Source: Thecamonas trahens ATCC 50062
Taxonomy: Eukaryota > Protista > Apusomonadida
DNA: 51,709 nucleotides
Direction of reading: 5' to 3'
NCBI RefSeq assembly: GCF_000142905.1
Contig: NW_013657614.1
Coordinates: 1 to 51,709 of the forward strand
The notes under the pieces were generated by a model. That model ran no database searches and was not told the DNA's origin. It was given only the letters and a program-made list of their open reading frames with translations. Position numbers and translations under genes: made by a program. This document shows, in pieces, positions 6,717 to 44,669 of this stretch. Position 1 is the first letter of the stretch; the number at the start of each line of letters is the position of its first letter.

Positions 6717-7436
6717 TCAGCACAGAGGGATGTGTGGCGGTAGGGCCAAGTGGAGTGGTTAGAGCAGACAGCTGAACTCTCGCACCCGGCTTCTGTTCTT
6801 CCCCGCCTCATTGTGTGCCCTCAACCCTCCGTCCGCATCCGTGCCTCTGTCTGACCTCACCCAAACAACCCCCTGCGACGACCTCGTGTACATTCACGAT
6901 TGACCTGCCCATCATCATGTCATCCATCACAATGACGCTCGACCCATCCCTCACCTTTGGCAATCAGCAGCGACTCGTACCTGCCGCCATCGCCCCCGCC
7001 CACCCTCCTGCTATCAATCAGCCGCCACTAGGGGACTCCCTGCAGACAAAACGCGGGAAACGTGGCGCCAAACCGTGGCGACCACGCCAAGCGCCCCATG
7101 CCCCATGCTCATGTCCGTGCCCAACGCCTCCACAGGCTCCCACTACCACCTCCTTGCCGAGTATGGCTATGGACTCTACCGTCGCCACCTTTGCGGTAGC
7201 CAGCCGGCTTGCGAGGTCAGTGTGGGGCGGCGGCTAGAGCAGGCTCCCGCCATGCCAAAAAGGTCGTGGAAGGCCCCTCTGAATCTACCCCTGTCACGCA
7301 GACCCATCCACCGAGGCGACGGGCAAGCCGCGCGAGACACCCGACTTGATCGTAGAGACCAACTCGGCTCGCCGGTTGCTTGTTGCCGCGTGGTGCAAGC
7401 TCCGAGTACTGTCCATACCTCCTCGTCTCTGCAGCC

Positions 7437-10400: not shown

Positions 10401-12218
10401 GGGGACCGGGTGGTGGTCTTCTCAAAGCGGCGGTCGACGCTGCAGTACCTGGCGGGCATGGTCCGCGACGCTGGCTTCTCACACTTTCTGATGGACGGCT
10501 CGACGCCGTCAGGCAAGCGGCAGGCGATGATTGACGAGTTCAACGGCGGCGAGCGCGACCTGTTCTTGATGGCGACGCGGGCCGGCAGCCTCGGCATCAA
10601 CCTCATTGGCGCCAACCGAGTCATTCTCTTTGATGTCTCGTGGAATCCATGCCACGACGACGAAGCCATTGTCCGGCCGTACCGGTTCGGCCAGCCCAAG
10701 ACGGTGTACGTGTACCGGCTCCTGACCCACACCACGGTCGAGGATTACATCCACCGGCGGCAGGTCTTCAAAAAGTCGATCTCGTCGGGCGTCGTCGACG
10801 ACTCGCCAGCAGCGCGGATGCTGTACACTTCGGAGATTTCGACGCTCTTTAACGCGGACCTGTTCGAGACACAGCCGGAGGTCTCGTGGACGAGCCTACC
10901 CGAGAGCAATCGCAGCGATCCCATCCTTGTGGGCCTGATGGAGACGAACCGCCGCGGCATTGCTCGCCTTGAGCGGCTGGCCGGTGATCCGGGGCTCAGG
11001 ACCAAGCCGCGGTACTTTGAGTACTGGCGGCCGATCATCTGCTCGCTCAAGGAAGTTCTTGTGGTGCTCGAGGACGAAGACGTGGCTCTCGACCCGGAGC
11101 GGCTCGAGTACCACCAGCAGCTCTTCAGGCGAGTCCTTGCCCAGTTTGCCATCGAGTCCATGGGCGACTACGAGCAGGCCCCGCCGTCGCCGCCGCGGCC
11201 AAAGCGGAGCGCCCGCCGACAGCAGATGCTCGAGGGACCCATTCTCTCGCCGGCGCAGCAGGAGGTGGCCGAAGCCTTTGCGCCGAACGCCAACCCGACG
11301 GCGATGCACTACCGCAAGCTCGCAGCGGTGCTTCGCGGTGAGGTCATGGACTGTGAAGCACCACCGCAGCAGCAACAGCAGCAGCAAGAACAACAACAGC
11401 AGCAGCAGCCGGCCAAGCCGGTCATTGACATTTCAGCATCACCCGAGGTTGTCGACCTCGAAGCTGAGAACGAGCCGGCACCAGCTGAGAAGCCAAGAAC
11501 GGCCGGTGGTTTCCGCAAGCTCGGCAACGGCGGCTCGCTGCTACCTGACGCGCCAACCGGCCCTCTGCTGTCAAAAGCATCCGAGAAGGCTGCGCTGGAC
11601 AAGGCCGCAAAGCGCAAGACACGTGCGCCGGCCCCGATCAGCGCGACGCCGTCGCCCAGGGTGGAAGGCAGTGCCGCGAGCGGCTCCAACGACAAAGCCG
11701 CTGCAGTGGACGAAGCCGCTGCAATGGACGTTGTGCAGTCGTCGACGCCTAGCGCGGGCCCCAGCAGGGGCGATGACTTTCATCGGCCGACTCGCGCGAT
11801 GCTCGAAGCGATGGCCGCTCAGCATGTGCGGGATCAGCTGAAAGCGCATGAGCAGCTTGCGGCGCAACAGGCTGGGTGGAACGTAATGCATCCGCCGATG
11901 ATGCCGCCGATGGCATTCTCGGGCGTGCCAGGGCTGGACTTTGCTACGGCAGCGGTGCCGTTTACACATCCAATGATGCCCGGGTTCGGCATGATGCCGA
12001 TGGGCCCGGTGCGCATGCCGTACCAGTACTCGGCCGAGGATCACATGCTTGGTCTGCAAGCGATGGAGCAGTCTGCGCAGCGACAGCGCGAGGCGATGCA
12101 AGCGGCGATGGCCGCAGCTCAGGCCAAGGCACAGGACGAGAGTGCGGTGGTCGCGAGCGGCTTGGAGCAGCCGGGAGAACAGCAGGACAAAAGTCCGCAA
12201 GTCGTTGTACTCGACTAG
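7437..12218 (+). CDS. SNF2-family chromatin remodeller, ATRX/ARIP4(RAD54L2)-like
   Basis: LMPHQREGIQFMW, GCLLAHDMGLGKT, GPDLVVADEAH, ALTGYPFQNRLEEYWCMVDWVRP, SGKCMVL, GINLIGANRVILFDVSWNPCHD, YRFGQPK; Lys-rich N-terminus, polyQ near 11370-11408; first ATG 7437. Confidence 0.9.
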   Translation: MPRTSSKSAAKGRNTASTKTATRRSCSTAKTKAKGKTKAKTTPRSQAKAKGNEGSKATGNNRRKGKRSARGLASSRSSSCSTASSELTSSASDIPDSLLADVTLPPPRLFGSGLRRPARPAHPALVLDESSSGASAVPERFSDSDLAPSEPQSSWEHPSEFEDSLDPNSESSWDGTAKSSKSRAVSRAKSRSKPTKTAAKKKTSTTGRSKKPPAKKTAKKPAKRLAKRTATKTKSKTKSKAKSATKGKKATSARKRKRGADSDQSSNESSVSANSPRPRKRKRRPRAPPKEVKLTEEEEQATEAARRGERKRLHQVARAHAMGMTSSDSTGALPLRYALPKKKSVSLLGVLVEAEVKPTPVPTMDDAEAGPAEAETKIKDEAKAEVGPAEAPMDVVPAAGKPVDDAEAETKTRDETKAEDDEDDEDEMLTVYIHDAIAGKLMPHQREGIQFMWDHVSTSTGFGCLLAHDMGLGKTLQVVSLIEAFLRAQIGKQALVLAPVTVIDNWEREFHKWLPAAACPTVRVMASSIPVAQRAEVLREWHTAGGVLICGFTMFCNLLSVVNPAKVKSAKAQAKAEIAHKKRVRRMEATYGEDALAIIRECLLSPGPDLVVADEAHIIRSSKTRVSQLLKQVATPRRIALTGYPFQNRLEEYWCMVDWVRPDYLSTIASFKSMFAVPITAGQCVDSLPSEIELSRARTHILAELLKTIVHRRTVALLHDRLNGIVEVSLTCQLAPLQVRLYQAFLAQHGVKGNGKLDRNMCLENEHIANSLLAHPAILKSEIMRHEEDPDFCRPLEFNTGLKKKRRRTGDDDDDVYNDFGSPPPGVPATHCYVPGDVGLPQIEGVELVEADAEAAADPVEAETATADDTAANNKAAGDEEDDKSNKGVDDEDGAEEISGSGSGESWDEDSLSSSVAAAFALFSESDDAPVCSSSDFEPEATMEVWRHDEYSWARPILNDYEGEQLASVAHSGKCMVLLWILIASRQVGDRVVVFSKRRSTLQYLAGMVRDAGFSHFLMDGSTPSGKRQAMIDEFNGGERDLFLMATRAGSLGINLIGANRVILFDVSWNPCHDDEAIVRPYRFGQPKTVYVYRLLTHTTVEDYIHRRQVFKKSISSGVVDDSPAARMLYTSEISTLFNADLFETQPEVSWTSLPESNRSDPILVGLMETNRRGIARLERLAGDPGLRTKPRYFEYWRPIICSLKEVLVVLEDEDVALDPERLEYHQQLFRRVLAQFAIESMGDYEQAPPSPPRPKRSARRQQMLEGPILSPAQQEVAEAFAPNANPTAMHYRKLAAVLRGEVMDCEAPPQQQQQQQEQQQQQQPAKPVIDISASPEVVDLEAENEPAPAEKPRTAGGFRKLGNGGSLLPDAPTGPLLSKASEKAALDKAAKRKTRAPAPISATPSPRVEGSAASGSNDKAAAVDEAAAMDVVQSSTPSAGPSRGDDFHRPTRAMLEAMAAQHVRDQLKAHEQLAAQQAGWNVMHPPMMPPMAFSGVPGLDFATAAVPFTHPMMPGFGMMPMGPVRMPYQYSAEDHMLGLQAMEQSAQRQREAMQAAMAAAQAKAQDESAVVASGLEQPGEQQDKSPQVVVLD

Positions 12219-17880: not shown

Positions 17881-19860
17881 TCAGATCGTGGCCCGGAGCG
17901 GAGAGACGGCGGTAAAGCCGACGCCGGCCTCGATGTCCTTGAGAACGCGGACGACGGTCTCGTCGTCAAACGGCTTGCCGTACACCTGGACGCCGATGGG
18001 AAGACCAACCGAAGAGGCGGTGGCGGCGCGAGCGGCAGAGTGGAACGGCTCGAGCGAGAACACCGGGCCCTGATAGATCTGCTCGTCGACGTCAACAACA
18101 GTGACCGGGACGGTGCCTGCGGCGGTGTTGAGGAGATTGATGAACATGGTGTACGAGGCGGCCGACGGGTTGAGCTTGGCCGAGTCGCCGAGGACAAACG
18201 GGGCGACGCCAAAGCCCGGGCAGAGCATGGCGTCGATGCCGGCCACTGCCCACGAGTCGTAGAACGCGTGCACGTACGCCGCCCGCTGCGCTTCGAGCTT
18301 CTCAGACTCGATAACTGTGCGCGGATGGGCTGTGCCGGCAAGCTCGGCCGTCCGGCGCATGCCCAGCGCCCACATGAGCGCGCGGGCAACGCCACGGACC
18401 GCCGCCGGTGCCCGAGCCGACGCCATCATCAGCAGATACTGCTTGATGAAGGTCTCGCCGCCGGCAGCCTCCACAAAGCCGTCCATGCCGTCCGCGACTA
18501 GGATGGAGCACCAAAGGTTGATGGCGGTGTCGATGGCCGGCGGTTGGAACGGGACCACCGTGTAGCCGGCGCGCTCGAGAGCTGCCACCGCCATGGCCAC
18601 CGCCCGCTTGTATGCAGCCGAAGCGGGAAAATAACCGTCGTCGTCGTAGTAGCCAATCACGGGCTTGGCATTGCCGGCCTCCGGGTCAGCCCGCGTCATG
18701 TCGTACGGTAGCGGCACCGTCGTCACGTCGTGGGCAGCCATGATGCCCGAGTTGATGATGGCGGCAAGGAGGGCTTCCGCATCACCCACCGTCCGCGCCA
18801 GTGGGCCCGCAACCGGTTGAATGTAGCTCTGCGCGGCGGTGGCGGGCTTGACGACTCCGCGCCGGGTCACCCGCGCCGGCGTCGGCTTGATCGTCGCCAG
18901 CCCGTTAAAGGTCGCAGGGATGCGGAGCGAGCCGCCGATGTCGGTCCCGATGCCGACGATCGAGCCACCGGCGCCAATCAGTGCACCCTCGCCGCCGGAC
19001 GAGCCACCGGGCGTCCGCGCGCTGTTCCACGGGTTCACCGTCGTTCCGAACAGGTGGTTGGTCGTCTCGGACGAGATGAGCGACTGCGGCACGTTGGTCT
19101 TGACAAACGGGATGGCGCCAATAGCGCGGATAGCCTGTGTGAGTAGCCCGTCGTCGTCAGAAGGGCCAGCAAGGTAGAAAGCTTTGAGCCCGCACGTCGC
19201 CCGTGTCCCACGGACCACGATCTGGTCCTTGAGCGAGATGGGGACGCCAAAGAGCGGCTTCTCCGCTAGCACATCATCCTCCGACGAGAGCCCCGACGCT
19301 AGCAGCTTGTCCAGCACCTCGTCCGCCATCCTCGCCTCCTCGAGCGCGTCGTCAAACATCGAAGCGGTGAGGCAGTTGGTCGCCGCATGCGCACGCAGCG
19401 CGAGAAACACATACGCCTTCATCACCTCCTCGGCCGAGTACGATCTGGTCACGATGGCCCTCGCCAGCTCCTGTGCGCTCGCCGCCGCGATTTTGGAAAT
19501 GACCTCTGCCGAGAGCCCCGTCCCTGCCTCGTCCTTGCACACGTGATCGCCGTCGACCTGCGGCTCAAAGGCGAGGGCAAAGGACGAGGTGATGCGGAGC
19601 CACTTGAGGGTAGCCACAATGGCGGTAGACGAGGCCTTGGCCGTCACCCCTGCTACAACCACTGCGCCTACCACAGCAAGCACAGGCTGCAATGGCGTTG
19701 GGAGGAGGCTCGTCGCCCGGCTGGCAAGCTCGGTAATTTGCTGCATACCGAATGAGTGGTGAGTCAGGTTGTGCGCTGTGTCTGCGTCAAGAGTCTGCGT
19801 CTGCATCTGCACCTGCATCTGCCTGTCCTGGAAGCCGACCTGCGCCACAGATGTGGACAT
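17881..19860 (-). CDS. Amidase-signature enzyme (FAAH-like); probable 99-nt in-frame intron 19741-19839
   Basis: PLFGVPISLKD (catalytic K), TPGGSSGGEG, GTDIGGSLRIPA (Ser-cisSer-Lys triad), GLPIGVQV; N-terminal hydrophobic segment; CAG|GT..CTGAC..TGCAG. Confidence 0.92.
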   Translation of the reverse strand: MSTSVAQVGFQDRQMQVQMQTQTLDADTAHNLTHHSFGMQQITELASRATSLLPTPLQPVLAVVGAVVVAGVTAKASSTAIVATLKWLRITSSFALAFEPQVDGDHVCKDEAGTGLSAEVISKIAAASAQELARAIVTRSYSAEEVMKAYVFLALRAHAATNCLTASMFDDALEEARMADEVLDKLLASGLSSEDDVLAEKPLFGVPISLKDQIVVRGTRATCGLKAFYLAGPSDDDGLLTQAIRAIGAIPFVKTNVPQSLISSETTNHLFGTTVNPWNSARTPGGSSGGEGALIGAGGSIVGIGTDIGGSLRIPATFNGLATIKPTPARVTRRGVVKPATAAQSYIQPVAGPLARTVGDAEALLAAIINSGIMAAHDVTTVPLPYDMTRADPEAGNAKPVIGYYDDDGYFPASAAYKRAVAMAVAALERAGYTVVPFQPPAIDTAINLWCSILVADGMDGFVEAAGGETFIKQYLLMMASARAPAAVRGVARALMWALGMRRTAELAGTAHPRTVIESEKLEAQRAAYVHAFYDSWAVAGIDAMLCPGFGVAPFVLGDSAKLNPSAASYTMFINLLNTAAGTVPVTVVDVDEQIYQGPVFSLEPFHSAARAATASSVGLPIGVQVYGKPFDDETVVRVLKDIEAGVGFTAVSPLRATI

Positions 19861-20025
19861 CGCACATGCTGATCGAGATGTACCAGGCAAGGAGAAAGCC
19901 AACACCTAGCATTCGAGCTATTTTCTCAGCCCGATATGATCAGCCAGGTCAGGTTGCCCGGCAGCACCTGACAGTGGGAGTGGGTGGCAGGCACGACACG
20001 ACTCTTGAAGCTCAGTTTGGACGAG

Positions 20026-20606: not shown

Positions 20607-22740
20607 ATGGCTGCCACTTCCGAGAACCCTCTCAAGCGCAAGCTCAGCGCAGATGTCATGACTGAGGGTATGTTCCCCATCCCCTCCCCACTTCCCCCCC
20701 CCCCCTCCTCTCCCGCCCCCCCCCCCTCNNNNNNNNNNNNNNNNNNNNNNNNNNNNNNNNNNNNNNNNNNNNNNNNNNNNNNNNNNNNNNNNNNNNNNNN
20801 NNNNNNNNNNNNNNNNNNNNNNNNNNNNNNNNNNNNNNNNNNNNNNNNNNNNNNNNNNNNNNNNNNNNNNNNNNNNNNNNNNNNNNNNNNNNNNNNNNNN
20901 NNNNNNNNNNNNNNNNNNNNNNNNNNNNNNNNNNNNNNNNNNNNTTCCCCCCCCCCCCCCATACCCATACCCATACCCCACCACCACCACCCTGCACAAC
21001 CAATAGTCGGGCAAGTCAAAATGTTTTATTTATATTTCGCAACATAGCACATGCTGCTCCATCATCCCCATGAGCATGGCCAAGCGCTTGCACTGCGGCA
21101 GCAGCAGTGTCGGTCACCGGGCACCGCTTGCTCTGGAGCTCGACTCCGCCAGCTTAAACTCGGCCCAAGCTCGGCTCGATCAAGGGCATGACTCACATCA
21201 TCGGCAACGGGCTGTAGACATGACGCCGACCAAGCGGGCCAAGGTGCGTGCGTTCTACATGTCGGAGACGTACGGGCAGACGATGGAGGTTCCGTTCTCT
21301 GCCGAGGTGCGGACCAAGATCATCTGCACGATCGGCCCGGCGTCTGCCAACGAGGCGATGATCCGCGGCCTGGTCATGTGCGGCATGTCTGTGGCGCGGC
21401 TCAACTTTTCGCACGGCAAGCACGAGTGGTTTGCTGAGGTCATTGCCACGGTCCGGCGCGTGGCGGCCGAGCTCAACCGGACGGTGGCGGTCATGCTCGA
21501 CACCAAGGGCCCCGAGGTGCGGACGTGCTCGCTGGCCGGTGGCGAGTCGGTCATGCTCCACAAGGACACAACGTTCACGCTGCTGACCGACACGTCGGTG
21601 GACGGCGACGACACGCGCGTGGCGACCACATACCCGGGCCTCCCGCAATCGGTGGAGGTCGGCGATTACATCCTCATCGACGACGGGCTCATCCGCCTCC
21701 GGGTCACTGAAGTCCACACCGACTCGGTTGTCACCACCGTGCTCAACTCGGGCCAGCTCGGGCAGAACAAGGGCGTGAACCTGCCGGGCAAGGAGTACGA
21801 CCTGCCTGCCGTCACCGCCAAGGACCGCGCCGACATTGCCTTTGGCGTCGAGCAGAACGTCGACATCATTGCGGCGTCGTTCATCCGCAACAAGGCCAAC
21901 GTCGACGAGGTCCGCGCCCTGCCGGGCGTTGCCGACGCCGGCATCCACATTGTGTCCAAGATCGAGTCGACTGAGGGCCTCACCAACTTTGACGAGATCC
22001 TGGCCGCCTCGGACGGTATCATGGTTGCCCGCGGCGACCTCGGCGTGGAGATCCCCATCGAGAAGGTGTGCAACGAGCAGAAGAAGATGATTTCCAAGTG
22101 CAACCAGGCCGGCAAGCCGGTCATCACCGCCACCCAGATGCTCGACTCGATGATCCGCAACCCGCGGCCGACCCGTGCCGAGTGCACCGACGTCGCCAAC
22201 GCTGTCTTTGACGGCACTGACTGCGTCATGCTCTCTGGCGAGACCGCGTCGGGCCTTTACCCGCTCGAGGCCGTCCAGGTCATGGCCCGCATTTGCGTCG
22301 AGTCGGAGGCCGCGCTCTCCTTCCGTGAGCGTTTCGAGAAGACCCGCGCCACCCAGCTCGCCCTCACCCCGGTCATCAACCACGCCGAGGCCATCGCCTC
22401 GTCGGCCGTCAAGACCGCCACCGACATCGGTGCCAAGCTCATCGTTGTCCTCACCGAGACCGGCCGCACCGCCCGCCTCCTCTCCAAGTACTTCCCCGAG
22501 GCTGTCATCCTCGCCATCACCGCCTCGCCCAAGACCGCCGCCCAGCTCCTTCTCACCCGCTCCGTCACCCCCATCAAGGTCAACCAGATCGACGTCAACG
22601 ACAACGTCATCCGCGCTGCCCTCTTTGAGGCCGTTGACTCGCAGATGATCGAGTCGGGCGACGCCGTCGTCGTCGTCTCGGGCACCATCGTCGGCCAGTC
22701 GGGCGCGACCAACACCCTCCGCACCCTTGTTGTCCCGTAG
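20607..22740 (+). CDS. PK: Pyruvate kinase; inferred exon 1 20607-20667, intron 20668-21217 (contains N gap), exon 2 21218-22740
   Basis: RTKIICTIGP, ARLNFSHG, LDTKGPEVRT, KIES, DGIMVARGDLGVE, ATQMLDSM, DCVMLSGETA; G|GTATGT donor and ACTCAC..TGTAG acceptor in matching phase 1. Confidence 0.95.
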
Positions 22741-25680: not shown

Positions 25681-27999
25681 TCACTCGGTCTCCAGATCCT
25701 CGACGGTCATGCCGGCGAGCGCGTTGTCAATCTGGCCCTCAAAGGCATCGAGCGCCTCGAGCTGGGCTTGCTTGTCGGCGGAGAGGGTCGGTGCCGGTGA
25801 GGGCTGCGGTGGCGGGCCGGTCCGTGCGCCCATGCGAAGCTCGTCGAGCGCCATGAGCACCTTGCTCTTGAAGGCCCGCAGGTCGGCGTCGCGCTCGCGG
25901 AGCTTGGCAGTGTACTCGACCTGCACCGCCGCCGTCCGCCGCTCCACCGCCGCCGCAATCGCCGACTGGACGCCCGGCGAGAGCTCGACCGCCGACGCTG
26001 CGCCGGAGCCGGCCCCGCCGCTCGACGCGAGCATGGAGCTCACCCGCGCCTCCACCCGCTTCTCCAGCACCTTGAGGTTCGACTTTTGGTTCTCGTGAAG
26101 CTTCTTGAGGTTGGCATACTGCTCCTTGCGGACGTCGCGGAGCGAGGTCTTGAGCGTCGCCACGGCAAACCGCAGCTCGTCGAGCTCGCTGCTCGCCCCC
26201 GCAGCACCCGCAGCACCGCCGCTCGACGCCGCCGCCACCTCGAGCTCGTCCATCCGCGTCTCGACCCTCGCCAGCTTGGCCTCGAGCGCCGCAGTCGCCT
26301 CAAAGCTGCCCGCGCCGGCGCCCGACGACGCCATCGACGCGTTGGCCGCCTCGGTCTGCAGGCTCGCCACCGTGTCCTCCACCAGCTCGAGCCGCGACGC
26401 GAACTCCGCCACTGACTCCTCCATGGCCCGGATCGAGGCCCGCGACGGCGACACGCCCGCTCCACCATCTCCACTTCGCCCGCCGCTGCCGCTGCCGCTC
26501 GCTCCGCCCGCCGCCGGCACAGACACTGCGTGGCCGTGCCGGAGGAGGACCAGCCGCATTCGCAGGTCCTCGATCTGGGCCTGGAGCGGGACAACCCGTG
26601 AGTCGACCTCGGCCTTGACCGACTCCTCTACAACCTCGGTCGTCTCGGCGGTGTGCGACTGGAGCAGCCGCGCGACCTCGTCGATAAAGGCGTCGCCGCG
26701 GAGGCCTGCCAGGTTCGACGCCAGCTCGGTCGCCGCCTCGCCGCTTCGGCGCTCCGGCTCGGTCGACAGGTACCACACCGCGCCCGAGAGCGAGTTGGTC
26801 TCGCTCAGCCCGCCAAAGGTGATAAACGAGCCGTCGACCACCGTGGCAGCGTGGTCAAAGACCGGCGACGGTGAGAGCACCCCGCCGGTGACCTCGACCC
26901 CGCGCGCCGTCGCCTCAACCCGCTCCCACCGGTTCTCGGCCACCCGGTAGAGCCACGCGTCCTCGAGCACCGACGCCCCGCGCCCGCCAAACACAACCAG
27001 GTTGCCGCCCACCTCGGCCGCGACGTGGCCCGTCCGCCGCTGCGGCCGCTCGCCCACAGGGTCCAGCACCTCCCACGCAAACGTCACCGGGTCCAGCCGC
27101 CACAAGTCACCGAGCCGGCCAGCCTCCGAGAACCCGCCAAAGCAGTAGACCGAGCCGGCCACCACCGTGAGCGTGTGCCCGTACCGCGGCGCAGGCGTGG
27201 CGCCCATCGGCATGACCTCAGTCCACGACTTGGACGCCACGTCGTAGGCCCACAGTTCGCCGTCGAGCGCTGTCCCCGTGCTCACGCTCGGGAACCGGTC
27301 CGCCCCGCCGTGCACAAGCATCACTCCGTCGTAGTACACCGCCGCGTGCCCGTACCGCGGCGACGGAACCGGCGCCGACGGCTGGACCGCAAACCGGGTC
27401 CACTCCCACTCGTCGATGTCCAGCCGCCACAGATCGTTGAACGCCCGCACGCCCGACTCGCCGCCAAAGACCAGCATGCCACCAGCGCCGTCGCCCACGG
27501 CAGAGTGGCCAAACCGCCGCGATGGCGTCGCCTGTGCCGTCTGCGGCGCCACCCGCCGCCACCGCAGCGTCTCCGAGTTGAACACCCACATGTCCTCCTG
27601 CGCCGACGCCGCCCATCCGCCAAACACCACCACCTCGCTCCCGTGCGCCACCGCAGAATGCCCTCTCCGCTTCACCGCCGTCATATGTGCGTTCGGCACC
27701 TTGTGCCACGACAGCGCCGCGTGTCCCACCCGCGCCTCACTGTGCCTCCGCCCGTAAATTCCCGGAATGCCCCAACGCCCGAATGTCCGCACACCACACA
27801 TCCCCAAAAATAATCCATCAATGAGTCGTGCATGTACACACCTCCGCCCCATGTCCACCAAGTCAGCCGAGCCGTCTACCTGGGTCAGCAGAGCCGTGCC
27901 CGTCGTCGGCACCTCCCCCCCCCCTCTCCCCTCACCCTCCACCTCCCCCCCCTCCCCTCACCCCCCCTCGTACTGTCCACAAGCACACACGTACGACAT
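25681..27999 (-). CDS. Kelch-repeat beta-propeller plus C-terminal coiled coil; inferred 5-nt exon 1 (27995-27999) and intron 27740-27994
   Basis: six kelch repeats (RRGHSAV..VFGG, RFGHSAV, PRYGHA, PRYGHT, RTGHV, FDHAA); ATGTC|GTACGT..CACAG|T gives in-frame MSEARV. Confidence 0.85.
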
Positions 28000-35473: not shown

Positions 35474-38400
35474 ATGGCCAACGACAACCAGGTCGACCAG
35501 GTCGACCAGGACGAGCAGGACGACCAGGACGACCAGAACGAGCAGGACGAGCAGGACGAGCAGTACAACGACCACGATGGCGACCAGGGCGATGAGTCGG
35601 GCCCGAGCATGGAGGAATACGTGCTGGAGATGGTGGACGCAGGGCTGTATGCGCTGGGCAATGGCGACAGTGAAACGGCGCTGAGGACACTCTCGGCGGC
35701 GGAGAGCGTGACGAGCATCAAAAAGTGGCGGCGACGGACAGACGAGCCGGCTGTCATCCGCAAGGCTGTGCGAGCACAGGCTCTTCTTGCTCTGGCTCGC
35801 TATTATGCTGAGCGTGCCCAGTGTCATGCTGCTCTTGAGTATGCAAACAAGGCGTACAAGATCGAACTCGGCTTGGACGAGTGCTACGCTCCCGAGCGGA
35901 CGCATCTGCTGCTGGCCTCGCTCCTGGCCCGGACTCGCAATCCGGCCGCTGCTATTCGCCACTACCAGATGGCTCTGGTTGCTATGGGGCCAGAGCCGCA
36001 TCCGGAGCTTGCTGCCATGGCTCATCACAACATCGGGCTCGAGCTGGAGCGGATGGGCAACATCCCTGCCGCGCTCAAGGCCCACGCCAACGCCGTCGAC
36101 GCCGCGACCTCGGCGCTCGGCGCAGACCACCCCACCACCGCTGCGGTGGTTGCCGAGGAAGCGGCGGCCAAGGCTCGTGCAGCTGCGGCCCGCCGCCGCC
36201 GCGACAAGTCGTCGGCGGTCCCGCGAGTTGCGCATGGGCACCCCCTCGCGCCCATTGACTCCGCTACCGCCGAGGTCTCACCCTACGCCGGCGAGGGCGG
36301 GAGCCCCGACGAGAGGCCGCGGACCGGGCGGATCGACGTCGAGCCGCCGCTCATTCCGCTGCTCGGCGTCGAGGCCGACGACGCTGTCGGCGGCGGCACC
36401 AGCGACGAGACGAGCTCGCCGCAGCGGCGGCAGACCCGCCCACGGCCACCGGCCGGACAGTCGAGCGGCCGGCCGGCTGCCCGGCGGCGCCGGCAGCGGC
36501 GCGTCGGGCTGCCCGGCCGACGAGCAGCCGATACTGCAGGCGGGCCAGAGTCGAAGCGGCTGATTGGNNNNNNNNNNNNNNNNNNNNNNNNNNNNNNNNN
36601 NNNNNNNNNNNNNNNNNNNNNNNNNNNNNNNNNNNNNNNNNNNNNNNNNNNNNNNNNNNNNNNNNNNNNNNNNNNNNNNNNNNNNNNNNNNNNNNNNNNN
36701 NNNNNNNNNNNNNNNGCTTTATCTCTATCGCCGGCGGCGCGGGCCGACGAGGCAGCCGACACTGCAAGCGGGCCAGAGCCGAAGCGGCTGATTGGCCAGT
36801 TGCGGGTCCACATTGTCTCGGCCAACATCTTGTCTGCTGCGGCGGCGCGCGCATCGGTGGAGACCGACGCGTCGGGCAAGGTCCTCGCCAACAGCTTTTC
36901 GCCGTACTGCGTAGCGTTTGTGGGCAGCGCGGAGGAGCGGACGCCTGTGGCGCGCGACACGCTCACGCCGCAGTTTGGCGGCGACGACATGGTGTTTGAG
37001 CTGAGCGGCGGCGCAACCGCGCTCGACCTCGCGCTCTTTGACGCACAGGACGACGCCAAGGACCCGTGCCTCGGCGCCGGCTCGATCGCGCTGTGGGAGC
37101 TGCATCTCGATGGGCGGCGGAACAACGTGGTGGTCGACCTCGACGCCGACGCTGGCCAGATCCGCGCCTGGACCGAGCTTGTGCTTGCGCCGGAGGCCTT
37201 TGCTGACGAGGAGGAGGTCTCGGCAGCCGAGGCCGACGCGGCGGCGACTCGGATCCAGGCGACGTGGCGCGGGCATGCGGCGCGGTCGCGGCTGCGTGCT
37301 GCGCGCGCGGCAGCGGCACGGGCGTCGTGGCGTGGTCCAGTGCTGGTCAACGTCATCGAGGCTCGCGACCTGCCGACCAAAACGCCGGTCCTCTGCACGG
37401 CGACGGCAGGCAAGGTGACGTTTGCCACCGAGCGGCGCGGCCCGCCAACGGCGCCGGTGTGGAACGAGGCCTTTGTGTTTGGCCTCGCCGGCACCGAGGC
37501 TGCGCTCGACGTCTCGCTCTATGAGGCAAACAAGGTCAAGGGCAAGCCATTGGCGCGCGGGCGGCTCGAGCTGAGCGGGCTTGAGACCCGTGGCGTCCGT
37601 AATGATGTATGGCTGGCCATGGCCGGTCGGAAGAAGAATTCGGCCGCCGGCGAGGTCCGCGTAGCCATCATCCACCGTCCGTCGCGCGAGCAGGTGCCGG
37701 CTGGCGCGCATGTCCGCACCTCGGAGCGCGTGGCCGAGTCAGAGACCGGCGAGGAAGTGGTGTGGGAAGGCAAGATGCTGGTGCGGGTCATCGAGGCACG
37801 GTACACCAATGGCCGGGTCGGAGCGTGCAAAGTTGACGTCCAGGGCCAAGCCGAGACAACCCGGCTGGTGACCAAGACGACGACGCCCGAGTGGAACGAC
37901 GCATTTATCTTTGACCTCGACGGCACCGACGGCGTCATCAACGTCCGGCTGCTGGACCTCAAGGGGAAGAAGAGCCTGGCAGTGGGGCATATTCCGGTCT
38001 CGATGCTCCTCGACAACGGGGCGTCCAACGACCTGTGGTTTGAGTTTGACGGCTACGACGGGCAAGTCCGACTCGACATTGTCCACAACCCGACACAGGC
38101 GCAGATCGACGAGGCGCTTCTTGCCGGCATGTGGTCAGGGCGGATTCTTGTCCGGGTTCTCCGCGCCTCCAAGGTGGCGACCAACGTGGCGTGTGCGGTC
38201 GAGCTGAACGGCGACCGCCAGCGGACGCGGCTGACCGAAGAGGCCGAGTGGGACGAGGGCTTCATTTTTGAGCTGGAGCCGACCCGCGAGCCTACCGTCG
38301 ACTTTCGGGTGGTCAAGGTCGACGACGGCGTCATCGCGTCGGGCGTGCTGGAGCTGACCGAGCTCAAGCGCGACGGCGTGGTCAACCGGTGTAACGTCAA

Positions 38401-41400
38401 ACTGACCGGCGGACGCAAGGGCGCGGCACTTGACGCCATTGTTGTCCACGACCCGTCCGAGGAGGAGCTCCGCGGTGTGACGGCACGGCAAGAGGAGCTG
38501 GCGGCGCAGGCGGCGGCCGAGGTGGCCGTCCGCGAGGCCGCCGCCCGTGCCGCGGCCGAGGCTGCTGCTCGCGCTGAGGCTGAGGCGGCAGCACGGCGGG
38601 CTGCGGCCCAGGCTGCATGGACCGGTCCGGTACTGGTCCGGGTCCTCTCTGCCCGCAATGTCCCCCAGGGCGACACGTTCAGCAAGTCGGATGCATACTG
38701 CGTGGTGCGGGTCCAGGGCGAGAAGGCGCAGACGCGGGTGGTTGGCAATGCCGCAGATCCGGTGTGGAACGAGGCCTTTGAGTTTGAGCTCGACGGAACG
38801 GACTCGACGCTCGCGGTGGCGCTCTACGACGAGGACGCCGACGGCGACGGCGACGATGCGCTTGCGCTCGGGCACATTGACCTGAAGAAGCTGGACAAGG
38901 ACGGGGCCGAGAACGACGAGTGGTACGCCATCGGCGACGACGGCGGCGAGGTTCATCTTGTCATTGTCCACCATCCGACCGAGGAGACGCTCGCGGCAGC
39001 CCGCAAGGCATCCGAGCCGCTTTTGCGTTCGTCGCCGTCGACAGCAGCTTGGACCGGGCCGATCACGGTCCGTGTTGTTGAGGCCAAGAACGTGCCAAAG
39101 GGCGACGCGTTCTCGCAGTCGGACGCGCGGTGCGTGCTCGAGCTGCAGGGCGAAGAGCGGCGGACGAGCGTGGTGGCCGACACTGATGCGCCGACGTGGA
39201 ACGAGGAGTTTGGCTTTGAGCTGGACGGCTCCGACGACACGCTGGCGGTCAAGCTTGTCGACGACGACAACGGGAGCGACGACGTGCTCGCGGTTGGCCA
39301 CGTGCCGCTGAGGTTGCTCGAACGTGACGGTGTGGTCAACGATCAATGGTATGGCTTTGACGACAGCGATGCTATGGTCCGCCTCGTGGTCGTTCACGGC
39401 GCGGAGGCTGCGGGCGAGTCGGCGATGGAGGCCGAGCCCGAGGCCGAGCCCGAGACTGAGGCCGCGCCACAGTCGCAGCCGTGGACCGGACCGATGCTGG
39501 TGCGCGTGGTTGAGGCCACGAAGGTTCCCAAGGGTGACACGTTTTCCAAGTCAGACGCGCGGTGTGTGCTCGAGCTGCAGGGCGAAGAGCGGCGGACGAG
39601 CGTGGTGGACGACACTGATGCGCCGACGTGGAACGAGGAGTTTGACTTTGAGCTGGACGGCTCCGACGAGACGCTGGCGGTCAAGCTTGTTGATGATGAC
39701 GATGGAAGTGACGACGTGCTCGCGGTTGGCCACGTGCCGCTGAACATGCTGGAGCGTGATGGCGAGACCGACCAGTGGTACGGATTCGACAACTGTGACG
39801 CCATGGTCCGGCTCGTTGTGCTTCACGGCGCAGCCGCCGAGGCACGGCTGGCGGCCGAGGCTGCGACCAAGGCCAAGGCCGAGGAAGAGGCGCGGCTGGC
39901 GGCCGAGGAAGAGGCACGGCTGGCGGCCGAGGCTGCGGCCAAGGCCAAGGCCGAGGAAGAGGCACGGCTGGCGGCCGAGGCTGCGGCCAAGGCCAAGGCC
40001 GAGGAAGAGGCGCGGCTGGCGGCCGAGGCTGCGGCCAAGGCCAAGGCCGAAGAAGAGGCACGGCTGGCGGCCGAGGCTGCGGCCAAGGCCAAGGCCGAGG
40101 AAGAGGCACGGCTGGCGGCCGAGGCTGCGGCCAAGGCCAAGGCCGAGGAAGAGGCACGGCTGGCGGCCGAGGAAGAGGCGCGGCTGGCGGCCGAGGCTGC
40201 GGCCAAGGCCAAGGCCGAGGAAGAGGCACGGCTGGCGGCCGAGGAAGAGGCGCGGCTGGCGGCCGAGGCTGCGGCCAAGGCCAAGGCCGAGGAAGAGGCA
40301 CGGCTGGCGGCCGAGGAAGAGGCACGGCTGGCGGCCGAGGAAGAGGCGCGGCTGGCGGCCGAGGAAGAGGCGCGACTGGCGGCCGAGGCTGCGGCCGCGC
40401 CCGAGCCCTGGACTGGACTCACTCGGATCCAGGTTGTCGAGGCCAAGAAGGTGCCCAAGGGTGACGCTTTCTCCAAGTCTGACGCCCGGTGCGTGATCGC
40501 GATTCAGGACCAGGAGCGGCGGACCAACGTGGTGGACAACACCGAGGCACCGACATGGAACGAAACGTTCGACTTTGTCCTCGACGGCAGCGACGCCACG
40601 CTGGAGGTCAAGCTTGTGGACGATGACGACGGGAGCGATGACGTGCTCGCAGTCGGTCACGTGCCGCTGGGCATGCTGGAGCGCGACGGAGTGGTCAATG
40701 ACCAGTGGTTCGGCTTTGATAATTGCGAGGCCATTGTCCATCTCATCATCACCCACCGCCCTGCGGCAGAGCCAGCGCTTGCAGCGCCCGCGGCGCCCGT
40801 CGCGGCGTCGAGCAGTGCCGAGTGGGCAGGCGACGCCATGGTCCTCGTAGCGTCGGGGAGTGAGCTCCCTGTCGACAGCTACGTTCGGTTGGAGATGGGC
40901 GAGACATCGGTGCGAACGAGCCCGGTGACCGGGGCGGCGGCCGAGATCAACGAGGCGTTCCTCATTCCGTCGGACGGAGCAGACACGTCGCTGGCCGTCT
41001 TTGTGTGCGATAACAAGACCGACGAAGTCATCTCAGCAGGACAGGTCCCGCTCGAGTCGCTCAAGGCCGACAGCGAGGAGAACGAGCTACAGGCCGGCTT
41101 TTCTGACAGCAGCACCGCAGTTAAGCTGTTGGTCATCGCCAACCCGACGGAGGAGCAGATGGCCATGTACATGCACTCGGCGAACTGGACCCCGTGGACC
41201 GGTCCGGTTGAGCTGCGGATTGTGGAGGCACTGCATGTCGAGAACAGCGAAGGCGACGATGCAGCGTTCTGCGAGCTGGCCATCCAGGGCCAGACCTTCC
41301 TGGCCGGCCCGGCCGTGGTCGGTGACGACCGGCACCCGGTGTGGGACAAGTCGTTTGTGCTCGAGCTCGACGGCTCGACCTCCAAGCTCAAGCTCCGGCT

Positions 41401-41656
41401 CCTCGACTCAACCAAGAATGCGCTCACCCATGGTCGCATCTCGCTCAAGTACCTCAACCGCGGTGGCGCCGTCAACGACTCATGGCTCGGCTTTGACAAG
41501 AAGGACACCCGCATCCACATCATCATCACCCACTATCCGTCGCTGGAGTATGAGTCGGAGTATGGCGGCGACGAAGCAGCCGCGTCAGCGTCGGCATCGG
41601 CGTCGGCGTCGGCTGCCGTGTCACCAACCAAGACTGTCGAGTCGCGAGTTTACTAA
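35474..41656 (+). CDS. Large protein with acidic N-terminus, TPRs, IQ motif, ten C2 domains and an EEEARLAA helical repeat; N gap 36568-36715
   Basis: AMAHHNIGLELE TPR; IQATWRGHAAR; repeated WxGx(L/V)xVxV(I/V)EA..PxWNExFxF C2 signatures. Confidence 0.85.
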   Translation: MANDNQVDQVDQDEQDDQDDQNEQDEQDEQYNDHDGDQGDESGPSMEEYVLEMVDAGLYALGNGDSETALRTLSAAESVTSIKKWRRRTDEPAVIRKAVRAQALLALARYYAERAQCHAALEYANKAYKIELGLDECYAPERTHLLLASLLARTRNPAAAIRHYQMALVAMGPEPHPELAAMAHHNIGLELERMGNIPAALKAHANAVDAATSALGADHPTTAAVVAEEAAAKARAAAARRRRDKSSAVPRVAHGHPLAPIDSATAEVSPYAGEGGSPDERPRTGRIDVEPPLIPLLGVEADDAVGGGTSDETSSPQRRQTRPRPPAGQSSGRPAARRRRQRRVGLPGRRAADTAGGPESKRLIXXXXXXXXXXXXXXXXXXXXXXXXXXXXXXXXXXXXXXXXXXXXXXXXXXALSLSPAARADEAADTASGPEPKRLIGQLRVHIVSANILSAAAARASVETDASGKVLANSFSPYCVAFVGSAEERTPVARDTLTPQFGGDDMVFELSGGATALDLALFDAQDDAKDPCLGAGSIALWELHLDGRRNNVVVDLDADAGQIRAWTELVLAPEAFADEEEVSAAEADAAATRIQATWRGHAARSRLRAARAAAARASWRGPVLVNVIEARDLPTKTPVLCTATAGKVTFATERRGPPTAPVWNEAFVFGLAGTEAALDVSLYEANKVKGKPLARGRLELSGLETRGVRNDVWLAMAGRKKNSAAGEVRVAIIHRPSREQVPAGAHVRTSERVAESETGEEVVWEGKMLVRVIEARYTNGRVGACKVDVQGQAETTRLVTKTTTPEWNDAFIFDLDGTDGVINVRLLDLKGKKSLAVGHIPVSMLLDNGASNDLWFEFDGYDGQVRLDIVHNPTQAQIDEALLAGMWSGRILVRVLRASKVATNVACAVELNGDRQRTRLTEEAEWDEGFIFELEPTREPTVDFRVVKVDDGVIASGVLELTELKRDGVVNRCNVKLTGGRKGAALDAIVVHDPSEEELRGVTARQEELAAQAAAEVAVREAAARAAAEAAARAEAEAAARRAAAQAAWTGPVLVRVLSARNVPQGDTFSKSDAYCVVRVQGEKAQTRVVGNAADPVWNEAFEFELDGTDSTLAVALYDEDADGDGDDALALGHIDLKKLDKDGAENDEWYAIGDDGGEVHLVIVHHPTEETLAAARKASEPLLRSSPSTAAWTGPITVRVVEAKNVPKGDAFSQSDARCVLELQGEERRTSVVADTDAPTWNEEFGFELDGSDDTLAVKLVDDDNGSDDVLAVGHVPLRLLERDGVVNDQWYGFDDSDAMVRLVVVHGAEAAGESAMEAEPEAEPETEAAPQSQPWTGPMLVRVVEATKVPKGDTFSKSDARCVLELQGEERRTSVVDDTDAPTWNEEFDFELDGSDETLAVKLVDDDDGSDDVLAVGHVPLNMLERDGETDQWYGFDNCDAMVRLVVLHGAAAEARLAAEAATKAKAEEEARLAAEEEARLAAEAAAKAKAEEEARLAAEAAAKAKAEEEARLAAEAAAKAKAEEEARLAAEAAAKAKAEEEARLAAEAAAKAKAEEEARLAAEEEARLAAEAAAKAKAEEEARLAAEEEARLAAEAAAKAKAEEEARLAAEEEARLAAEEEARLAAEEEARLAAEAAAAPEPWTGLTRIQVVEAKKVPKGDAFSKSDARCVIAIQDQERRTNVVDNTEAPTWNETFDFVLDGSDATLEVKLVDDDDGSDDVLAVGHVPLGMLERDGVVNDQWFGFDNCEAIVHLIITHRPAAEPALAAPAAPVAASSSAEWAGDAMVLVASGSELPVDSYVRLEMGETSVRTSPVTGAAAEINEAFLIPSDGADTSLAVFVCDNKTDEVISAGQVPLESLKADSEENELQAGFSDSSTAVKLLVIANPTEEQMAMYMHSANWTPWTGPVELRIVEALHVENSEGDDAAFCELAIQGQTFLAGPAVVGDDRHPVWDKSFVLELDGSTSKLKLRLLDSTKNALTHGRISLKYLNRGGAVNDSWLGFDKKDTRIHIIITHYPSLEYESEYGGDEAAASASASASASAAVSPTKTVESRVY
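39835..40400 (+). repeat. Coding tandem repeat AEAAAKAKAEEEARLA (48-nt and 24-nt units)
   Basis: direct reading. Confidence 0.92.
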
Positions 41657-41945: not shown

Positions 41946-44669
41946 CTAGTGCGGTCCCGCCTCGGCTAGAAGCGCCCAATCGGTGTGGCGGCAGTTCCGC
42001 TCAAAGCGGACAACCCAGATGCGAGAGAGCGGACGGGAGCCAAGGACAACCACGAGCTGGGGGGTAGACATCCACGCGCCGGCGATGGGCTCGTCGAGCG
42101 CGACCGAGACGGAGGCGGTCGACGAGCTTGCCGGCGACGACAGCTCGATGCCAAAGCGGTCTGCCGAGACAGCGACGTCGAGGTCTGTGGACCGAGGAGA
42201 TGCACACGAGAGTGAGGCGAGGAGCTCGTCCGACGGCGGAGCAAAGTCGAGCACAAGTGTTTCGCGCACCTGGGAAACAAGCGTGTCAAACGAGGCGACA
42301 AGCCAGGCGCCCGAGGCATCACAGACGCCGACCGAAAACTCCGTGCGAAGGCCCGAGACGATGAGAGCGATCGGCTCAACAGGGGCCTGCCACGCACCGC
42401 GCCATGTGTGCTGTGCGAGGTCAAAGAGGTGGATGCGGTTGGCTGCGTCGAGGGCAACGGCGACCGCAGCAGCGTCCGAGGCCGCCGGCGCCACGTCGGT
42501 CCGCCAGCCGGCGCGGGCCGCCGAGGCTCCAAGATGCAGGCCGCGGACAAGGATCCGGTTCCCTGTGTTCTGCTCCGGCTTGGTTCGGGCCTCGCTGAGC
42601 GAAGGCGGCGGGAGCGGGAGCGGAGAGTGTGGGCCGAGGTTGACGCCAAACACTGTCTCGGCCATGGTGGAGACGGCGGTGGTGACCACCGGCGTGATGG
42701 CTTGCGACGATCCGAGCGACGAGGCCTCGCGTGGCTTGTCGACCCGGAGCAGGGCGATGCCTGCGTCACGGATGCGGGTCTCAAAGGTCTCGGCCATCGA
42801 GACAAGCCCAATGTGCCAGTTGGCGATGTGCTGGGTGTACGAGGTGGCGGAGCGGAGCGGAATGTGGACTGGGTTGAGGACGAAGCGAGGCCGCGCGGCG
42901 ACAAGCTCGTCAAAGACGTCGCGGTTTTCGGCATCAAAGCAAATGAGGATGCCGGCTCGACCAAAGGCGGTGTCGACTACAGTGGTAGATGACCCGGCTT
43001 TGAGCGAGGAGGCACCGACGAGCTTGCGCTTGCGGTACGTGGCGAGGACGCAGCCCTCGGGATCAAGGAGGATGGCCTGGCAATAGCTGGCGCCATGTGG
43101 CGCGGTCTCGATCCGGGTCCCAAGCAGGGCATAGACACCGTAGCGGCGGATAACACCTGCCACGGTGGCGATGAACGGGAGCTCGTCGAGTGGGGCGCCA
43201 CGGGCTTCGGCTTGAAGGTCGCTGCGCGAGGCGGTCACCCAGCCCTCGGGAAAGACGACGACGGCTGGCGGTGGGCCGCGGCCGGAAAAGATGGCATCGA
43301 GCTCGCGGGTGATAACGTCTTTGGCGTCTGCAGCAAACATGTGGCGGACTTGAAAGGCGAGCGCGTGGACGGCGCCATCGCTGGTGATGGCGGCGGCGTC
43401 CGATTCGGAGCTGCGAGCCGCGAAGAGCTCCGATTGATAGGCTGTGAGCTCGTCGAGCGAGATCGGGAAGAGAAAGCTGTTCGATGCAAACGGGGACGAT
43501 GCAAAGGTGGCCTGGAGCGCCGCGAGGGTTGTGAGCAGCGTGTCGGTGGAGATGACGCTCATACCCGATGCCCAGACCTCGCCCCAGTCGCAGGCGGGCG
43601 GAACAGCGGCGCGGACAGCAGCATCAGCGGCAACGAGGTCATCGGCGGTGACTCGGCGGGTGAGGTACGCGAGGGCGCGAGCAATGCCGCGGACAATGGC
43701 GGCTTCCTCGTCCGGAGCGAGCGGGACGCCGGCGCAGCTCTCGATAAAGGCGCGGGTCGAGTCCGGCAAGGCGCGTGCGTCGAGGACAGTGGCGACGGCA
43801 GCGGTGACCCGGGCGATGTACGCATCAGCATCGCAGGAGGTGCGAGGCGTAGTGACCGCCGAGTCGATGGCGACAACAACGCCGTCGAGCGCGCGGAAGA
43901 GGACGTTGCCTGGGTTGCCGTCATTGTCCCACACCTCGCCAAACGGAGCACGGTCCGAGTTGTTTGTCAGCAGATCGGCGACAAGCATATATCCGAGAGC
44001 CTCAAGTTGACGCGGCGCAAAGGGACAGTCAGAGATGGCGGCGACGGCCGTCGGCGGAAGATCAAAGTGGGCGAGGAGGCGGGCAGCAAAGTCCGGGCGG
44101 AGCGGGAGCTTGTCGAGGGTCACACCGGGCACGTACTCCATGACGGCAAAGTATGGGCGATTGAGATGCTTTTCAACAGCACGAGCAGTGGCATCAGATC
44201 CCGTGGCAGCCGTCCGTTCCTTGATAAGCGCCCACTCGCCCGAGTTGTCGGTAAAGCGCACCAGGCGCATGTCCGGCACAGGCATCAGCGGCAGGAGGCT
44301 GGCCAGGAGACGATTGGCGAAATACTCTTCGGGCAAAGTGGTTGCCGATTTGACGACAACTGCCTGATCGGCGTGATTGACAACCAGCAGAACACTGCCG
44401 GCATCATTGAGCGTCTTGCTTGCGCTCACTGATTCCCATGACCACTCTTGCGGGGCAATGGCTGCCGGTGCGAGGCTGACGGCAGCGACATGCGGAGAGG
44501 CAGTTGGCTCGGATGCCGTCGGTGGGCGGTACGTGGCCTTGATGACCCCATCAGGCGGTCCGGGTGGGGGTGGGGGTGGGGGGCCAGAGGTGGGACGCGT
44601 GGACGTGGCGGAGGCTGGGCCTGGGCCTGGGCCTGGCGGTGGTGGCGGTGGTGGTGGGGGGGCTGACAT
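41946..44669 (-). CDS. Polyproline + actin-fragmin-kinase-like catalytic domain + carbon-nitrogen hydrolase (nitrilase-fold) fusion
   Basis: VVVKS..EYFA, RPYFAVMEYVPG, ADLLTNNSDRAP..WDNDGNPGNVL..VAIDS; then VVFPEG, YRK, GILICFD; ATG 44669 gives 907 aa. Confidence 0.8.
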   Translation of the reverse strand: MSAPPPPPPPPPGPGPGPASATSTRPTSGPPPPPPPGPPDGVIKATYRPPTASEPTASPHVAAVSLAPAAIAPQEWSWESVSASKTLNDAGSVLLVVNHADQAVVVKSATTLPEEYFANRLLASLLPLMPVPDMRLVRFTDNSGEWALIKERTAATGSDATARAVEKHLNRPYFAVMEYVPGVTLDKLPLRPDFAARLLAHFDLPPTAVAAISDCPFAPRQLEALGYMLVADLLTNNSDRAPFGEVWDNDGNPGNVLFRALDGVVVAIDSAVTTPRTSCDADAYIARVTAAVATVLDARALPDSTRAFIESCAGVPLAPDEEAAIVRGIARALAYLTRRVTADDLVAADAAVRAAVPPACDWGEVWASGMSVISTDTLLTTLAALQATFASSPFASNSFLFPISLDELTAYQSELFAARSSESDAAAITSDGAVHALAFQVRHMFAADAKDVITRELDAIFSGRGPPPAVVVFPEGWVTASRSDLQAEARGAPLDELPFIATVAGVIRRYGVYALLGTRIETAPHGASYCQAILLDPEGCVLATYRKRKLVGASSLKAGSSTTVVDTAFGRAGILICFDAENRDVFDELVAARPRFVLNPVHIPLRSATSYTQHIANWHIGLVSMAETFETRIRDAGIALLRVDKPREASSLGSSQAITPVVTTAVSTMAETVFGVNLGPHSPLPLPPPSLSEARTKPEQNTGNRILVRGLHLGASAARAGWRTDVAPAASDAAAVAVALDAANRIHLFDLAQHTWRGAWQAPVEPIALIVSGLRTEFSVGVCDASGAWLVASFDTLVSQVRETLVLDFAPPSDELLASLSCASPRSTDLDVAVSADRFGIELSSPASSSTASVSVALDEPIAGAWMSTPQLVVVLGSRPLSRIWVVRFERNCRHTDWALLAEAGPH

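Follow-up and report, generated by a model that had tools for sequence, protein, structure and literature searches.

The actin-fragmin kinase (AFK) of Physarum polycephalum (1CJA; PF09192) phosphorylates actin at Thr202/203. It acts on actin only within the actin-fragmin complex (PMC4758236, PMC1261164), and older literature confined AFK to Physarum, or to Physarum and Dictyostelium (PMC1261164, PMC1420674, PMC4758236). In plants and green algae, PROPYZAMIDE-HYPERSENSITIVE 1 (PHS1) carries an AFK-type kinase fused to a second protein-acting enzyme and modifies a cytoskeletal subunit (PMC8783414). The nitrilase superfamily contains the amidases Nit1, Nit2 and yeast Nit3 and the fusion protein NitFhit (2W1V, 1F89, 1EMS). 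It also contains Nta1, an N-terminal amidase (5B62), and Lnt, an apolipoprotein N-acyltransferase (8AQ2), so members of this superfamily are able to act on protein N-termini or acyl groups. Here we describe a gene of the gliding marine apusomonad flagellate Thecamonas trahens ATCC 50062, in which an AFK-type kinase and a nitrilase-like hydrolase are joined in one protein. The gene is located at positions 41946–44669 on the minus strand of a 51,709-nucleotide stretch of DNA (contig NW_013657614.1, positions 1 to 51,709). This whole stretch is called the window, and coordinates refer to it unless another contig is named.

The fusion is real, and it is an undescribed variant of two known enzyme kinds. 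Like Physarum AFK, the Thecamonas protein has the kinase fold with a helical C-lobe, the catalytic Lys/Asp/Asn/Asp residues, the insert between Asp and Asn, and a beta-rich C-terminal domain after the catalytic part. The differences are that the two proteins share only ~20% identity, that a nitrilase-like domain of ~260 residues is added between the kinase and the C-terminal domain of the Thecamonas protein, that its tail is not a recognisable kelch propeller, and that its N-terminus is polyproline. PHS1 has a mitogen-activated protein kinase (MAPK)-phosphatase-like domain as the partner of its kinase instead of a nitrilase-like domain. It is set apart here by its description and not by its sequence, and Pfam found no PHS1-type phosphatase domain in the Thecamonas protein at E up to 1. 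The hydrolase domain shares the alpha-beta-beta-alpha fold with Nit1, Nit2, yeast Nit3 and NitFhit (Z 20.9–23), and its catalytic triad was aligned with that of Nit2, but the identity to Nit-type amidases is ~15–17% and the Thecamonas family has its own ICxDxE motif. A further difference from Nit2 is that the loop at Nit2 E128 is shorter and non-acidic, and that the spacing from the catalytic Lys to the catalytic Cys is 30 residues, compared with 41 in Nit2. Nta1 and Lnt have the same fold (Z 19.4 and 18.3, respectively), but no specific sequence relationship to the Thecamonas hydrolase.

Two enzyme domains in one reading frame

The gene consists of 907 codons and a stop codon in a single frame (41946–44669, minus strand) with 0 internal stops. 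The single open reading frame (ORF) reported in the initial annotation of this DNA was thus confirmed. The codon-position GC pattern is kept throughout the ORF. Upstream of ATG 44669, the frame remains open as far as GTG 45074. The GC content of third codon positions is 0.61 in this extension and 0.74 within the ORF, and the extension shares bases with another ORF on the same strand whose end is at 44740. Because the extension loses the GC pattern and overlaps the other ORF, translation would start at ATG 44669, or possibly at the alternative ATG 44735. The T. trahens genome assembly has 28.7 Mb in 131 contigs with a GC content of ~63%, and this type of hydrolase is present in a single copy.

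HMMER analysis with Act-Frag_cataly and CN_hydrolase placed both domains above the curated cut-offs. The AFK-type atypical protein kinase domain, including its helical C-lobe, covers residues ~58–386 (43512–44498, minus strand). Act-Frag_cataly (PF09192) matched residues 75–261 with E 2.8e-22 and 79.9 bits (cut-off 24). Among solved structures, the best sequence match of the single protein was Physarum AFK 1CJA (E 4.4e-7), and a profile of 110 relatives lifted this match to E 7e-53. A structure model was built from the 110-sequence alignment, with a mean predicted local distance difference test score (pLDDT) of 83.6. An AlphaFold model made from the single sequence was discarded (mean pLDDT 36.9). 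The model was compared with structure representatives using VIA-align, and was also searched with Foldseek and against ESM Atlas. VIA-align matched 1CJA with Z 28.0 and a root-mean-square deviation (rmsd) of 2.5 for 289 of 327 residues (model residues 18–346), including the modified helical C-terminal subdomain of the AFK fold. The next-best kinase structure, CtkA, had Z 13.2. Foldseek also matched the AFK fold (E 3.1e-12).

The catalytic residues of the kinase were located by alignment with 1CJA. K107 (VVK, 44349–44351), D239 (NNSDR, 43953–43955), N255 (GNPGN, 43905–43907) and D269 (IDS, 43863–43865), all on the minus strand, align with the VK, NNSDR, GNxxN and IDS motifs of 1CJA, and most relatives retain them. 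The protein also has the AFK-specific insert described in PMC1261164, located between the catalytic Asp and Asn, and the length from DR to GN is similar to that in 1CJA. The initial annotation had recognised an AFK-like kinase by its motifs. All the motifs it named are present, and Pfam, the 1CJA alignment and the fold agree with this assignment.

Two further AFK-domain genes were found in the genome. One is an AFK-only paralogue of 492 residues (L002:937-2415, G000:C23, plus strand; Act-Frag_cataly E 2e-13), which has a run of seven Pro directly upstream of its kinase domain. The other, the third AFK-domain gene, is a 3130-codon frame (L009, G000:C43:274068-283457, plus strand) with a weak AFK-type match at residues 309–457 (22 bits with hmmscan, 27 in the genome search). 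Its partner enzyme is different, an adenylate/guanylate cyclase catalytic domain at residues 1840–1985 (E 1.2e-5).

After the kinase, a low-confidence linker at residues ~402–428 (43386–43466, minus strand; pLDDT <50 at model residues 362–388) is probably disordered. It is followed by the nitrilase-superfamily (CN-hydrolase) domain at residues ~430–689 (42603–43382, minus strand), which was supported by Pfam, profile and fold matches. CN_hydrolase (PF00795) matched residues 470–632 with E 1.1e-11 and 45 bits (cut-off 23.2). After 1CJA, the sequence matches to solved structures were aliphatic amidases and other nitrilase-superfamily chains. The family profile matched mouse Nit2 (2w1v) with E 1.6e-19 and with the triad aligned. 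In the structural search, Nit2 was matched with Z 23.0 and rmsd 2.6 over 225 residues (model residues 391–644), more than 20 other nitrilase-superfamily structures had Z 18–23, and Foldseek gave Nit2 E 1.5e-12. A formamidase cluster in ESM Atlas was matched with a template modelling (TM) score of 0.71 over model residues 390–649. Thus, neither the kinase nor the hydrolase failed profile or structure matching (Z 28.0 to 1CJA and 23.0 to Nit2). The profile matches of the hydrolase in the PDB were scattered over many branches of the superfamily, with Nit2 and Nit3 as the best. The characterised branches considered were nitrilase, aliphatic amidase, Nit, Nta1, Lnt, vanin, carbamoylase and NAD synthetase. 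The scores against NCBIfam equivalog models were all 12–21 bits, compared with cut-offs of 133–503; the lnt model gave 21 against 133.

The triad of the hydrolase consists of E475 (FPE, 43245–43247), K547 (YRK, 43029–43031) and C577 (ICFD, 42939–42941), all on the minus strand. These residues align with E59/K134/C166 of aliphatic amidase and with E43/K112/C153 of mouse Nit2, the latter counted on the printed alignment. In 99 aligned hydrolase rows with 20–45% identity to the Thecamonas protein, the triad residues were kept in 77–92% of all rows, a share that rises above 90% once rows with a gap at the position are set aside. Two other motifs are near-invariant and specific to the family, ICxDxE (D579 and E581) and NP (N599-P600).

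Relatives, N-terminus and C-terminal tail

A word-indexed homologue search matched two proteins, and its candidates were filled by low-complexity words. An exhaustive phmmer search was therefore used against 1.84 billion cluster representatives. It returned 520 matches at E ≤0.001, 115 at ≤1e-10 and 16 at ≤1e-30, and many of them align to the query in one stretch across both domains. Domains and residues were counted in the best 150 of the 520 matches. Among these, ~20 clusters with <50% mutual identity have both domains, with the kinase K/D/N/D, the hydrolase E/K/C and D579/E581 intact. Polykrikos P0019 is a dual-domain exception with Met at the position of the triad Lys. In 57 further clusters, some of them fragmentary, the hydrolase has E/K/C and D579/E581 intact and a kinase part was not detected. 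Kinase-only clusters numbered 50. Pfam found both domains in every dual-domain candidate scanned, and most of these proteins end in a propeller of the WD40, tectonin or kelch type.

The fusion occurs in Mastigamoeba balamuthi (EP00727_P011700, "putative actinfragmin kinase"), Mastigella eilhardi, Pelomyxa schiedti (KAH3761370.1, "actinfragmin kinase"), Pigoraptor chileana (EP01137_P008440), Polykrikos kofoidii (EP00927_P060120), two other dinoflagellate transcriptomes, an MMETSP transcript and marine metagenomes. Dual-domain assembled transcripts with one ORF were present for Polykrikos, Pigoraptor, Mastigella, two dinoflagellates and one MMETSP sample. For relatives, and thus indirectly, this speaks against the refuting outcome named in the initial annotation, an ORF divided between transcripts. 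The match to Salpingoeca rosetta PTSG_09534 (XP_004989963.1) is weaker, and its two Pfam scores fall slightly short of the cut-offs. In the sequences examined, Cavostelium and Paradermamoeba have the hydrolase without the kinase part, and the Cavostelium one also has a propeller. Because the same fusion is found in amoebae, dinoflagellates and animal relatives, it is not a one-off. By sequence, it is a conserved, widespread and uncharacterised eukaryotic family with members in Amoebozoa, Holozoa, dinoflagellates and an apusomonad. The search of protist architectures thus placed ~20 dual-domain clusters in several eukaryotic supergroups.

Dual-domain relatives are 26–48% identical to the Thecamonas protein, and they share its order of kinase, hydrolase and C-terminal beta domain. 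The closest relative is P0002, a protein of 790 residues from Tara Oceans marine metagenome contigs. It is 44–49% identical by BLAST and phmmer, and 51% identical over the hydrolase domain. The alignment runs from about residue 85 to a few residues short of the C-terminus, so the two proteins are homologous through the tail. In a tree of 76 hydrolase domains, the Thecamonas protein and P0002 were grouped with a support of 99. Fused and unfused rows were interspersed in this tree with 15 changes, at least 9 of them forced; many of the unfused rows may be fragments, and the motif label missed two fusions. P0042, a metagenome protein of 875 amino acids, keeps the module of hydrolase and propeller, but its N-terminus carries CAP_C (E 6.7e-7, above the cut-off) instead of the kinase.

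The initial annotation knew of no AFK-nitrilase fusion and regarded the system as undescribed. No description was found in the literature searched, but relatives are already deposited in databases. They carry generic names, and the fusion is not unique to the Thecamonas genome. Literature searches pairing AFK with nitrilase or CN hydrolase, pairing Thecamonas with fragmin, and using the relatives' accessions returned nothing, with the papers on the AFK family covered in part. None of the papers found with AFK family identifiers names a nitrilase or carbon-nitrogen hydrolase next to AFK. No published function of the database relatives with the same fusion was found in the literature searched.

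The polyproline N-terminus spans residues 1–40. As the initial annotation had noted, it contains two tracts, one of nine Pro at residues 4–12 (44634–44660, minus strand) and one of seven Pro at residues 30–36 (44562–44582, minus strand). N-terminal Pro runs were found in 9 of the 14 family members with a full N-terminal extension. The carriers are Archamoebae, a dinoflagellate, metagenomes and the Thecamonas protein itself.

The C-terminal part, residues 690–907 (41949–42602, minus strand), was defined with the model and the relatives. It starts with a conserved junction motif (R695, N701, G703 and R705), and it has ~15 predicted strands with pLDDT mostly 60–90, in agreement with the beta-rich tail described earlier. 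It is ~30% identical to the tail of P0002. Within the dual-domain family, tails are either ~205–245 or ~370–450 residues long. Most relatives with the same fusion have a propeller of 370–450 residues, whereas the Thecamonas protein and a subset of relatives have the short tail. Of these two classes, only the long one is recognisable as WD40, tectonin or kelch propellers. When short tails were compared with the WD40 tails of relatives by hhalign, the 25-residue junction motif alone aligned. Self-comparison of the tail found no internal repeats. A feature search of ESM Atlas with the tail returned only unnamed clusters (0.79), and in fold searches with the whole model the two enzyme domains took up the matches. 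By Pfam and by alignment to the relatives' propellers, it did not qualify as a kelch-repeat propeller of the Physarum AFK kind.

Proposed function and competing explanations

Since the catalytic residues are kept across relatives at <50% identity, both domains are probably active enzymes held together by selection. Their association with a beta-rich or propeller domain has likewise persisted across very great evolutionary distances. We tentatively favour, with somewhat less than even confidence, the reading that the Thecamonas family member is an enzyme with polyproline, an AFK kinase, a divergent thiol hydrolase and a beta-rich domain, and that its target is cytoskeletal, most likely actin. 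Several observations point to the cytoskeleton. Among solved kinases, Physarum AFK is by a wide margin the closest (Z 28 compared with 13). Polyproline runs at the N-terminus were found again in distant lineages and in L002, the AFK-only paralogue; such recurrent runs are typical of actin regulators, and long Pro runs are typical sites of profilin binding. The relative P0042 has, in place of the kinase, CAP_C, which is the actin-monomer-binding end of cyclase-associated protein. In addition, the Thecamonas genome encodes actins, a three-repeat gelsolin/fragmin-type protein (G000:C9 near 467184–468086) and profilin (G000:C18 near 54826–55927). Physarum AFK is the sole close homologue of the kinase to have been characterised, and from this precedent we infer that actin would be the substrate.

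In the mechanism that we propose, the target would be cytoskeletal monomers or small complexes, most likely of actin. The polyproline tracts may recruit profilin-actin or an SH3/EVH1 partner, and the beta-rich tail may grip the target or an adaptor, as has been assumed for the kelch domain of Physarum AFK. The kinase domain would phosphorylate the target. Cys577 would attack an amide (C–N) bond on the same target or on a bound partner via a thioester intermediate, with deamidation, deacylation and acyl transfer as the candidate reactions. A bulky or protein-borne amide seems more likely as the substrate of the hydrolase than a small metabolite, because the protein lacks the glutamate with which some classical amidases position small amides, and because the hydrolase nearly always occurs with a protein-binding propeller.

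Prediction of a complex between kinase residues 60–400 and an intronless Thecamonas actin (L011:1492-2616) gave a score of 0.00, which is not evidence either way. This paralogue was used in the prediction because the conventional actin gene carries an intron-like insertion. The best-scoring conventional actin (L010:1498-2700, G000:C39, minus strand) has an in-frame Pro/His-rich insertion of ~25 codons near codon 36. The insertion resembles a read-through intron, and the locus also has a long run of N.

Several points weigh against this assignment. Polyproline is common in this GC-rich genome, as the six frames of the window hold 14 runs of at least 6 Pro, and Pro runs are missing from the closest relative, P0002. 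The CAP_C fold is also common to tubulin cofactor C-type domains, and P0042 is therefore not a pointer to actin only. In plant PHS1, a kinase with the AFK fold phosphorylates tubulin (PMC8783414). The tail is not demonstrably a propeller, with no match to kelch, WD40 or any other Pfam family. The hydrolase also lacks a counterpart of the second glutamate beside the triad, which is essential to certain nitrilase-superfamily enzymes (PMC6946656). Between K547 and G559 none of the residues is acidic, Nit2 E128 falls in a stretch that is absent from the family, and amidase E142 aligns to Ser. Across the family, an Asp or Glu was found anywhere from K+4 to K+10 in 44 of 83 members, with no fixed position. 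The initial annotation had called the hydrolase intact and its triad complete; the Glu-Lys-Cys triad E475/K547/C577 stands, and the second glutamate is missing. Because this glutamate is absent here and unconserved in the family, the sequence does not assure full hydrolase activity.

The missing glutamate bears on two other explanations of the hydrolase. In one, which we consider unlikely, the domain acts on a small metabolite as Nit1 and Nit2 do, and the fusion is a NitFhit-like Rosetta stone whose activities share no protein substrate and are coupled only by regulation or co-localisation, e.g., as a metabolite-gated kinase. NitFhit (1EMS) is a precedent, with its Nit domain fused to an unrelated signalling enzyme that has a different substrate. 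Both by sequence and by fold, the hydrolase matches small-molecule amidases best (Nit2, yeast Nit3, formamidase and Pyrococcus amidase). However, the second glutamate that positions small amides is missing (PMC6946656), no NCBIfam equivalog came near its cut-off, and a protein-binding propeller accompanies the hydrolase in almost all cases, with or without the kinase. In the other, the nitrilase-like domain is non-enzymatic and provides the kinase with a scaffold for dimerisation or oligomerisation, or with a ligand sensor. Proteins of the nitrilase superfamily form obligate dimers or larger assemblies, and the absence of the second glutamate would also suit a domain without catalysis. However, E/K/C, D579, E581 and N599-P600 are kept in rows of 20–45% identity, which is hard to explain without catalysis. 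As the triad is so well conserved, we regard a purely structural role as improbable, more so than a metabolite substrate.

Other explanations concern the target and the gene itself. The same architecture with both enzymes active could act on tubulin or another non-actin protein. The kinase would then work in the manner of the tubulin kinase domain of PHS1 in plants and green algae, and the hydrolase could remove an amide-linked tubulin modification such as an isopeptide-linked residue or an acetyl group. PHS1 has an AFK-type fold able to phosphorylate tubulin (PMC8783414). Many organisms that carry the family are flagellates, as Thecamonas is, and P0042 would fit tubulin too, given the CAP_C-like folds of tubulin cofactors. 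On the other hand, the protein lacks a MAPK-phosphatase domain as in PHS1 (Pfam, E up to 1), the recurrent polyproline runs are of a kind typical of actin regulators, and the family is also present in the non-flagellated amoebae Cavostelium and Paradermamoeba, though there, in the sequences examined, as the hydrolase without the kinase part. We consider a non-actin target distinctly unlikely, slightly less so than a scaffold role. Last, the single protein might be an artefact, read from two neighbouring genes or from an ORF that arose by chance in GC-rich DNA. GC-rich genomes do yield long spurious ORFs, and many overlap this locus. In addition, an environmental contig from the same organism (L004; ENA ERZ505273 contig NODE_7901), which is 99.6% identical over window 43759–41398, begins mid-gene with a different 5′ end: its bases 1–220 are unrelated, and they replace the kinase half in a hybrid gene call, P0001. 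We rejected this end as a sign that the gene is split. Coverage of the contig is 1.3x and the 220 bases match nothing in the genome, so it is probably a misassembly, and the odd bases most likely come from a misjoin. As relatives are homologous over the whole length, and the same domain order recurs in ~20 clusters and in assembled transcripts, an artefact is barely credible.

Beyond the Thecamonas protein, the favoured reading extends to a broader proposal, which we put forward as speculative. The family may be a hitherto unrecognised, two-headed class of cytoskeleton-modifying enzymes, in which the hydrolase would remove or transfer an amide-linked group on actin, tubulin or a partner, the kinase would phosphorylate the same complex, and the class would predate the split of Amorphea and alveolates. 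If so, a new enzyme superfamily would join the writers and erasers of cytoskeletal modifications. Action of the hydrolase on a cytoskeletal protein would be a new post-translational chemistry for the nitrilase superfamily in eukaryotic cell biology. If the hydrolase is instead a metabolite amidase, the protein would be a more ordinary Rosetta-stone fusion. In either case, the locus leads to at least ~20 diverged clusters in several supergroups, with both active sites apparently under selection. The family may be testable in genetically tractable organisms, e.g., S. rosetta, where the match is weak.

Other genes of the window

The convergent neighbour of the fusion gene is a 2060-codon ORF at 35474–41656 (plus strand) with many C2-like repeats and a long Ala/Glu-rich repeat. 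It is broken near its N-terminal part by ~50 unknown codons (assembly N). Further genes are located at 25684–27942 (minus strand), 17884–19905 (minus strand), 3343–5649 (minus strand) and 7380–12215 (plus strand), none of them evidently tied to the fusion. Their products are a kelch-repeat protein of 753 residues, an enzyme with the amidase signature (Pfam Amidase, E 1e-93) and two helicases of the SNF2 family. The pyruvate kinase encoded at 21070–22737 (plus strand) matches the NCBI sequence from Thecamonas trahens ATCC 50062 with 100% identity, and this identifies the organism.

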